Positions 18,608-19,280 of a DNA stretch of 32,000 nt are shown here, in pieces. Where the stretch lies: NCBI RefSeq assembly GCF_000400465.1, contig NW_008806280.1, forward strand, positions 30,001-62,000, written 5' to 3'. The DNA is from Wallemia ichthyophaga EXF-994. Taxonomy: Eukaryota; Fungi; Basidiomycota. Below the pieces are notes generated by a model. The model worked only from the letters and a program-made list of their open reading frames with translations. It did no database searches and was not told where the DNA came from. The number at the start of each line of letters is the position of its first letter. Within the stretch, counting starts at the first letter, position 1. The position numbers and the translations under genes are program-made.

Positions 18608-19148
18608 ATGTCTTCTGCAGCCCACGCCAACCCAGCATTCTCCAAGAAGAACAAAGGTTCCGAAGGTATCAACTCAAAGCTTCAGCTCGTTGTCAAGTCG
18701 GGCAAGTACACGCTCGGCTACAAGTCTGCATTGAAGCAATTGAGATCTGGCAAGGGTGAGTTTTGATTATTATAAGAATACTCAGTCGATTATCTGGCAT
18801 CGCACAGCGTGACTCAAGGTCGCTGCTAGAACTGGAGCCTCTGTTAATCACATTTGGCTGAGAAGGTTCTCTCTTACTCCCCACTAACACTCTCTCTCAG
18901 CCAAGCTCGTCCTCATCGCAGGCAACTGCCCACCTTTGCGCAAGTCTGAGCTCGAGTACTTTGCCATGCTTTCAAAGACAGCTGTTCACCACTACTCGGG
19001 CTCAAACGTCGCCCTCGGTACCGCTGCTGGTAAGCTTTTCCGCGTCGGTGTCCTCACCATCCAAGACCAAGGTGACTCTGACATTGTGAGTTGAAAATTT
19101 TACCCCTTTCTATGTCTTACACACCAACAGCTCTCATCATTCGAATAA
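18608..19148 (+). CDS. RPL30: 60S ribosomal protein eL30; introns 18756..18900 and 19086..19130; probable 5'-UTR intron 18553..18602
   Basis: [37 protein letters not shown]|[62 protein letters not shown]|LSSFE*. Confidence 0.97.
18828..18870 (+). promoter_or_regulatory. Kink-turn RNA element in the RPL30 intron (putative eL30 binding site)
   Basis: 5'-AGAACUGGAGCC-3' (18828-39) pairs with 5'-GGCUGAGAAGGUUCU-3' (18856-70). This gives a GCC/GGC C-helix, a 3-nt UGA bulge, G.A, A.G and A.G pairs, one G.U pair and 5 Watson-Crick pairs. Confidence 0.75.
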
Positions 19149-19280
19149 GTTTGTTGATTGATTTGTAACTGGAGTCATTTATTGGATTGAGTCGAATACG
19201 AAGAGGTGTGTTTTGAGTGTTTATACTCCCGAGTGCCATGTCTTTTAGCTATAATGTCGAATAAATAAATACAAGTGCTT

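Follow-up and report, generated by a model that had tools for sequence, protein, structure and literature searches.

We analysed a 32-kb stretch of the Wallemia ichthyophaga genome (hereafter the window, in whose numbering positions are given), in which the gene for ribosomal protein eL30 (RPL30) carries, within its first intron, a kink-turn (K-turn) RNA element. The gene occupies positions 18608-19148 of the + strand, on which all parts of the gene and element described below also lie, and its three spliced exons yield a 116-residue protein that is 100% identical to the W. ichthyophaga eL30 database entry (P0001). Exon 1 (18608..18755), delimited by spliced translation, by its 100% identity to this entry and by PF01248, comprises codons 1-49 and the first base of codon 50; exon 2 (18901..19085) was placed by the gene model and by comparison with Wallemia mellicola, and exon 3 (19131..19148), encoding LSSFE and the stop codon, by the protein match. 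Intron 1 (18756..18900), supported by the gene model and spliced translation, is a phase 1 intron of 145 nucleotides (nt) that splits codon 50, begins with a GUGAGU 5' splice site (18756-18761) and ends with a CAG 3' splice site (18898-18900). Read-through translation of a retained intron 1 meets an in-frame UGA at 18764..18766 (..SGKGEF-stop). Intron 2 (19086..19130) measures 45 nt and is without a structured element. The same eL30 protein was found on 16 contigs of sequenced W. ichthyophaga assemblies, and the same K-turn in all six of the loci that were read. Separately, the public gene model of W. mellicola RPL30 (P0002, 154 amino acids; L001:1501-2099) looks wrong, with intron 2 read through unspliced.

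The element spans 18828-18870 (43 nt) and reads AGAACU-GGA-GCC-(16-nt loop)-GGC-UGA-GAA-GGUUCU, giving a canonical (C) helix of three G-C base pairs (bp), a 3-nt bulge, G.A/A.G/A.G pairs, a U.G pair and five Watson-Crick pairs. The 5' strand of the non-canonical (NC) helix, AGAACU (18828..18833; positions 9n-4n), pairs with its 3' strand GGUUCU (18865..18870), and in the alignment of relatives six of six pairs covary. Next on the non-bulged strand is GGA (18834..18836; 3n, 2n and 1n), which provides the sheared G.A/A.G partners and is invariant in 22 of 22 aligned elements, a yeast-type site included. The C helix is formed by GCC (18837..18839) and, as aligned, GGC (18856..18858), with covariation at its first two pairs (GC/UA and CG/UG/AU), and is closed by a hairpin loop of 16 nt (18840..18855) that comparison with relatives shows not to be conserved. 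Within the bulge UGA (18859..18861; L1-L3), L2 = G and L3 = A are invariant, with U, A or C at L1 and AGA in the yeast-type site. The following GAA (18862..18864; 1b-3b) forms sheared pairs with A18836 and G18835 plus an A.G pair with G18834; here GA is invariant and 3b is A or U. These letters conform to the K-turn definition of Klein 2001 and Lilley (G18862.A18836, A18863.G18835, and C18858-G18837 at -1b.-1n), a layout shared by each of the 22 aligned elements and by the consensus from RNAalifold; in most species the element is 29-47 nt long.

An initial annotation of the window, made from its sequence, had reported the K-turn, its coordinates and its geometry as given here, and the window letters and gene model bear it out, as they do the length and coordinates of the oversized 145-nt intron and the CUAAC motif 13 nt downstream of the element. 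This motif (18884..18888) is a consensus match to a branch site, with a predicted branch A at 18887, and lies 12 nt before the 3' splice-site AG. The accompanying statement that almost all other introns measure 46-57 nt was checked in part: intron 2 has 45 nt, a neighbouring TFIIS gene has ~97 nt for its introns altogether, and a window-wide regex survey was too noisy.

Geometry alone is not significant, because generic K-turn hairpins (C helix of at least 3 bp, NC helix of at least 5 bp, loop of at most 20 nt) were no rarer in the window than in shuffles, with four found on both window strands versus 2.5 +/- 1.6 in 200 dinucleotide shuffles. A looser descriptor, allowing loops of up to 150 nt, returned ~44 matches per window strand and was dropped as evidence. 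When the letters of eL30-type sites were specified (GGA / NGA-GA(A/U)), the window gave a single match versus 0.04 expected, and 8 of 200 shuffles had any. Since neither geometry nor folding energy gives support, the case rests on species comparison, and it is against this comparison that a chance resemblance without function has to be weighed, as the frequency of generic hairpins and the lack of a thermodynamic signal in W. ichthyophaga might suggest. The loose scan also flagged a hairpin directly past the RPL30 stop codon, at window positions 19149-19197 (GUUUGUUGA-UUGAU..AUUGG-AUU-GAGUCGAAU), which is without eL30 letters or an R1 score (R1 being the covariance model described below) and is probably due to chance.

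Comparison across fungi revealed the element at the same codon and phase in a range of lineages. W. mellicola keeps CUGGAGCC...GGCUGAGAAGG unchanged, with the 16-nt loop shortened to AUAU (4 nt) and G-C in place of one A-U pair in the NC helix; its intron is otherwise near unalignable, with 54% identity upstream of the element versus 63% at the third codon positions of exon 1. The intron position itself (after ..R.GK) is common to Cryptococcus, Pisolithus, Tulasnella, Mucorales and metagenome fungi, and the element occupies it in Cryptococcus gattii (211-nt intron; loop GGCG), Pisolithus (97 nt) and Tulasnella (79 nt; loop GUAA). Two Mucorales with Phycomyces eL30 also carry it at this position; their introns measure 134 and 188 nt, and the loop of the element is expanded by 44-93 nt. 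A further 80 RPL30 loci were taken from soil and other metagenomes by protein similarity rather than by RNA; ~30 of the 80 are agaricomycete genes with this intron, and the element is present in all of those. Altogether, the element is present in 46 of the 50 loci that have an intron here, the exceptions being two Rhodotorula copies and two loci with introns of 45-48 nt. The K-turn intron is the largest of the gene in each named species, except in Sporormia, discussed below, where it is the second largest.

Pairwise identity is 0.93 within the element; it falls to 0.80-0.82 in the neighbouring exon sequence and to 0.55 and 0.60 in the intron on either side, so that the element, better conserved than exons, appears to be under purifying selection. 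To the alignment of 22 distinct elements, with the yeast-type site included, RNAalifold assigned without constraint exactly two helices around a 3+6 internal loop, and the invariant columns are GGA, L2-L3 = GA and 1b-2b = GA (G9, G10, A11, G23, A24, G25 and A26). Double-sided changes were observed in eight of eight canonical pairs, and none of 500 shuffles matched the observed values; 98% of cells are paired, a percentage inflated because the scan that located the sequences required pairing, and sliding the partner register by one column lowers pairing to 60-66%. The diversity of pair types seen at a given column is free of this bias. The covariance model built for the element (R1) has a single match in the 32-kb window (35.7 bits, E 4e-8; next best 11 bits), and on 209 kb of loci it matches essentially only elements in or just upstream of RPL30. 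The element, first noted in a single genome, is kept in the same intron in Agaricomycotina, Wallemiomycetes and Mucorales, and its pairs covary. Together, these findings indicate that it is almost certainly a selected RNA structure; conservation across phyla at one intron position, identity above that of exons, and covariation refute in practice the chance explanation, to which we assign a negligible probability.

The letters of the element also point to the RNA-binding partner. In the budding yeast Zygosaccharomyces bailii, the 5' end of RPL30 reads AGACCGGA-GUGU-(11 nt)-ACGC-AGA-GAUGGUCAGUAU, aligned as ACCGGA-GUGU..ACGC-AGA-GAUGGU with GAUGGUCAGU as the 3' end of the site, and this orthologue bears out the yeast site given in the initial annotation (CCGGAG / CGC-AGA-GAUGG). 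Strand order and the 2+5 purine loop are common to the two sites, as are the invariant letters GGA, L2 = G, L3 = A and GA. Column by column with Z. bailii, the Wallemia element shows the 2+5 purine loop, the letters GGA / NGA-GA(U/A) and a C helix closed by a hairpin loop, and it lies in the RPL30 transcript, inside intron 1, as the single R1 match in the window. The position differs, as the initial annotation had noted: in Z. bailii the AUG falls at 2b-4b and the 5' splice site GUCAGU starts from 5b, whereas in Wallemia the start codon and first 5' splice site are outside the structure, which is wholly intronic and lies 72 nt past the 5' splice site, at a distance of 220 nt from the AUG. It is located close upstream of the branch-site motif, in line with the control at the branch point that the initial annotation had suggested. 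Wallemia eL30 is a clear orthologue of the yeast L30 of RNA complex 1T0K (E 3.5e-39) and retains GKLFRVGV, with an aromatic residue matching yeast F85, which the account in PMC3706390 describes as the main RNA contact.

The Saccharomyces-type RPL30 (formerly RPL32) operator has been described by Eng & Warner 1991, Vilardell & Warner 1994, Mao 1999, Chao & Williamson 2004 (PDB 1T0K) and Macias 2008, with summaries in PMC11585973 and PMC3706390. According to the summary in PMC11585973, L30 bound to the RPL30 structure in S. cerevisiae permits U1 binding and blocks U2, and PMC3706390 recounts that L30 also represses translation of the spliced mRNA via the same structure. Like the element in Wallemia, the Saccharomyces K-turn resides in the protein's own transcript, has a variable C-helix loop and is directly followed, 3' of the bulged strand, by a splicing signal; failed recruitment of U2, the outcome in yeast, would be expected in Wallemia too. 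In Saccharomyces, however, the start codon and the beginning of the 5' splice site of the intron after it are part of the NC helix, and the structure persists in mRNA, where it also controls translation. The Wallemia element is confined to the phase-1 intron at codon 49/50, with 72 nt separating it from the 5' splice site and 13 nt from the branch motif, and is absent from mRNA. Because of this absence, control in Wallemia would be possible only on splicing or pre-mRNA decay. From these comparisons we regard the element as probably an eL30-type K-turn that acts as an RPL30 autoregulatory operator inside an internal coding intron, and eL30 itself, giving negative feedback, as its likely ligand.

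The K-turn might be real and conserved and yet be bound by another L7Ae-family protein (Snu13/15.5K, Nhp2, eL8 or eS12), perhaps acting as an intron-derived K-loop or box C/D-like ribonucleoprotein (RNP) that damps excision of the host intron. K-turns are generic sites for the L7Ae family, the 3' strand of the element holds CUGA, a D-box-like word, and a 2026 preprint (bioRxiv 10.64898/2026.08.03.742641) describes 15.5K-bound intronic K-loop RNAs in human that suppress host-intron excision. These resemble the Wallemia element as intronic K-turn-like elements that lower excision of their host intron, but they comprise terminal C/D motifs, another protein, thousands of host genes and stable processed RNAs, whereas the Wallemia element is gene-specific and has eL30-type letters. 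Such a ligand is further opposed by the element's tracking of RPL30 wherever it is found (internal intron, AUG or 5' untranslated region (UTR)), by letters that match the yeast eL30 operator (L2 = G, L3 = A, GGA) and not a C box RUGAUGA or a U4-type AAU loop, by a strand order that is the reverse of a C/D terminal K-turn, and by host introns of 79-87 nt, too small for a small nucleolar RNA (snoRNA)-like RNA. Identity as a box C/D snoRNA or 15.5K K-loop RNA was rejected on the absence of a C box, on the bulged strand being the 3' strand and on an element length of mostly 29-47 nt versus at least 60 nt, and Rfam snoRNA families gave no match at threshold, the best snoRNA-like scores (12-19 bits) lying elsewhere in the gene. 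We consider a ligand of this kind quite unlikely.

Under eL30 as ligand, the position of the element relative to the branch site bears on the step that would be controlled. Downstream of the helix, a CURAY motif follows after 13 nt in W. ichthyophaga and after 17 nt in W. mellicola. In Cryptococcus and Tulasnella the gap is a single nucleotide (1 nt), in Pisolithus it is 3 nt, in the two Mucorales 6 and 9 nt, and in 25 metagenome loci 4 nt, whereas the 5' splice site precedes the helix by anything from 22 to 72 nt. The added length of long introns lies upstream of the element or within its loop, and none of it separates the element from the branch motif. The 3' splice site of the C. gattii K-turn intron (L008:1334-1544) is 105 nt past the element, and the 112-nt tract from the element to this splice site is without AG (p ~0.02), as would be expected if the branch site adjoining the K-turn, far from the 3' splice site, were the one in use. 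Furthermore, the RPL30 gene of the dothideomycete Sporormia fimetaria possesses two eL30-type K-turns (L105:1141-1207 and L105:1757-1791): the first is located at the AUG and is yeast-like (UACCGGA-GCGC..GCGC-AGA-GAUGG), and the second, of permuted strand order (GCCC-UGA-GAAGGAGUC..GACUUC-GGA-GGGC), lies in the 146-nt intron 4, 12 nt before GACUAAC. As this second copy sits in another oversized intron, branch-proximal placement appears to have arisen in two different introns. Intron 2 of the same Sporormia gene (153 nt) is likewise oversized.

In the sequence of events that we infer, from the ligand and the repression of splicing to the step blocked and the fate of the unspliced RNA, free eL30, left over from the K-turn in helix 58 of 25S ribosomal RNA, would bind the nascent intronic K-turn. 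The bound hairpin, ending 13 nt (in relatives mostly 4 nt) before the branch-site sequence, would then cover a stretch that SF1/BBP and the SF3a/b components of the U2 small nuclear RNP (snRNP) need, and stable recruitment of U2 would be hindered. Gozani, Feld and Reed are reported to have found in 1996 that U2 snRNP depends on SF3a/b contacts, independent of sequence, to the ~20 nt that precede the branch site. Intron 1 would thereby be retained, translation would end at the UGA after three codons, and the unproductive transcript would probably be degraded by nonsense-mediated decay or nuclear decay. Conversely, when eL30 is scarce, the weak C helix of 2-3 bp would not be held kinked and the intron would be spliced. 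On balance, we favour branch-site/U2 recognition as the blocked step.

Two alternatives concern this step rather than the structure. In the first, eL30 binds, but the purpose is a nuclear decay mark, a sink or chaperone for eL30, or slowing of the second catalytic step; precedents are the S. pombe rpl30-2 gene, which as outlined in PMC4695336 is controlled by its paralogue's protein and by Pab2/Mmi1-exosome decay, and the translational repression exerted by yeast L30 from the same structure (summarised in PMC3706390). Such purposes would not account for a spacing to the branch motif that is tight irrespective of lineage and that recurs independently in a different intron in Sporormia, and a wholly intronic element cannot act on mature mRNA; we judge them unlikely. 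In the second, the hairpin is a protein-independent splicing aid that shortens the distance between 5' splice site and branch site in an over-long intron, as is known for zipper stems in yeast ribosomal-protein introns (RPL7B), and the element is indeed located between these two sites. A zipper, however, needs pairing only, whereas here the unpaired letters (GGA, NGA, GA) are invariant and the helices vary, and in introns of 79-87 nt the hairpin is the cause of the extra length and not its remedy, which leaves this explanation very improbable.

A number of observations weigh against an eL30 operator that blocks the branch site. First, the C helix has just 2-3 bp, and in W. ichthyophaga a competing hairpin has the minimum free energy (MFE; -11.1 versus -10.3 kcal/mol for the K-turn layout, with pair probabilities of 0.22-0.36), in a comparison where nearest-neighbour folding cannot score sheared pairs; nor is the whole intron more stable than shuffles (z = +0.46). 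The MFE structure of relatives' elements is the 2+5 layout, and the helix of the MFE fold between CUCAGUC (18782-18788) and GGCUGAG (18856-18862) was set aside as it is not kept in W. mellicola. Second, the sequences used for covariation came from the pairing-demanding scan mentioned above. Third, the W. ichthyophaga branch site is predicted from a consensus match, and in introns of 80-90 nt closeness to the branch site is partly forced by limited room. Fourth, another L7Ae-family ligand is compatible with the sequence evidence. Finally, R1 found no element at the Rhodotorula locus, where the intron is present, nor at the Acaromyces and Spizellomyces loci, where it is absent, and none was found at the RPL30 locus of Hydractinia, so that the element is dispensable in these four lineages. 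Spizellomyces intron 2, which contains UGAGAUGG, was considered as a candidate and rejected, with no K-turn pairing found and no R1 match. The Rhodotorula gene model (P0111; L014:1201-1905) has an implausible N-terminus built from GC-AG 'introns', and an upstream site may exist there. Intron 1 of Hydractinia RPL30 (683 nt; L103:2516-3198) contains two copies of a ~75-nt element (CCUUUCUGAAUCGCACUU...GAACCAAGRAAGGAGA...ACACUCC) that has no Rfam match; these may represent a pair of intronic small RNAs.

Scans of the window against Rfam 15, at gathering and at permissive thresholds, returned nothing relevant, and at the gathering threshold none of nine RPL30 loci, the yeast-type locus included, had a match. 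Full-text searches confined to the open literature turned up no intronic, basidiomycete or mucoralean eL30 K-turn. The new position claimed in the initial annotation is therefore new relative to Saccharomycetaceae, Rfam and the open literature; an intronic site may not be unique to this element, as an ascomycete 'rpl30 motif' may also be intronic. That motif (Li & Breaker 2017, BMC Genomics 18:785, PMC5640933), which is not in Rfam 15, has 47 examples from Pezizomycotina and S. pombe, the S. pombe member lying on chromosome record NC_003423.3. Like the Wallemia element, it is a candidate for eL30 autoregulation identified by comparative genomics at RPL30, and it comprises a hairpin with a conserved purine-rich internal loop. 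In the consensus, taken from the authors' Stockholm file, the motif is ~180 nt long; its conserved 5' blocks, CUAUCUAAC and GCUAGCGAAA, precede a long hairpin whose internal loop reads AAUGA / GAUAAGGA, and its 3' strand (..UGAUAAGG..) resembles that of Wallemia (..UGAGAAGG..). The loop letters, however, do not fit a GGA / NGA-GAA K-turn in the same register, and the motif is described as a 5' UTR element with a species list of ascomycetes only, whereas the Wallemia element is wallemiomycete and lies in a coding-region intron. Because the alignment starts with a 5' splice-site-like GUAYGC, the Li-Breaker motif may itself be intronic. Membership of the Wallemia element in this motif was rejected, as the conserved blocks are absent near RPL30 on the + strand of the window and none of several K-turn registers tried fits cleanly. 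A loose regex match to the motif in Sporormia (L105:208) is a chance occurrence inside the ATG9 coding region.

Further parallels come from systems with related components. Splicing of S. pombe rpl30-2 is repressed by the paralogue protein Rpl30-1 (Lemieux 2011, cited in PMC4695336), a case from outside budding yeast in which, as proposed for Wallemia, splicing of an RPL30 pre-mRNA is under the control of an eL30 protein. In the outline given by PMC4695336, that case differs in being cross-regulation between paralogues that involves Pab2/Mmi1 decay, and the outline does not define the RNA site. In archaea, the 5' leader of the L7Ae mRNA contains a K-turn to which L7Ae itself binds (PMC5539422, PMC6298567), likewise an instance of an L7Ae-family ribosomal protein controlling itself via a K-turn that probably needs the protein to fold; unlike in Wallemia, control is translational, and the protein is a different one. 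Relative to these systems, the Wallemia element would share the protein-RNA pair and the logic of the yeast operator, and what is new is its position, the adjoining splicing signal and the lack of a translational arm.

K-turns of this type were identified at several positions. In Saccharomycetaceae they overlap both the AUG and the 5' splice site, in the dothideomycete one is located at the AUG and a circularly permuted copy in intron 4, in copepod-like animals they lie in the 5' UTR, and in Basidiomycota and Mucorales they adjoin the branch point of the intron at codon 49. This distribution raises the prospect, which we rate at about even, that the eL30 K-turn operator is an ancient module across fungi, and possibly opisthokonts, that has moved repeatedly within RPL30, its branch-proximal form being a distinct veto on U2 docking that arose at least twice, in two introns. 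Conservation of the same protein-RNA pair across at least three fungal phyla, with an operator that outconserves the surrounding coding sequence, would imply an old and strongly selected circuit, and autoregulation by yeast L30, a textbook case of a protein controlling its own splicing, has so far been treated as a one-organism story. An operator placed beside another splicing signal would provide a natural experiment on how a small RNP blocks splicing at a branch site compared with a 5' splice site, and a compact (~30 nt), protein-responsive, branch-point-proximal splicing switch would be testable and reusable in fungi with short introns. The analysis also points to a gap in RNA family databases, Rfam 15 being without a family for any eL30 operator.

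Marine metatranscriptome contigs contributed a set of 5' UTR K-turns with the same letters (..CUGGA-UUCC..GGGA-AGA-GAAGG..) and covarying C helices (L053:40-76, L056:42-83, L075, L087:248-302 and L062), and contig L067 has a same-letter 5' UTR K-turn ~50 nt upstream of an ATG at 259. The eL30 proteins of these marine contigs cluster at 90% identity or more with copepod (Calanus, Eurytemora, Acartia), annelid and insect eL30, which suggests that some animals may autoregulate eL30 by means of a K-turn in the 5' UTR. An animal-like RPL30 5' UTR (L085:77-152) combines two nested K-turns of opposite topology on one helix, the outer reading GGA...AGA-GAAGG and the inner UGA-GAAGG...GGA. Two other eukaryotes have the element upstream of the coding region: in one (L035:1365-1393, also L036 and L038), the AUG follows 19 nt after the element and is itself followed, 15 nt further on, by a 5' splice site, and in the other (L097:1249-1287), the helix follows a probable 3' splice site and runs into the AUG of the open reading frame.

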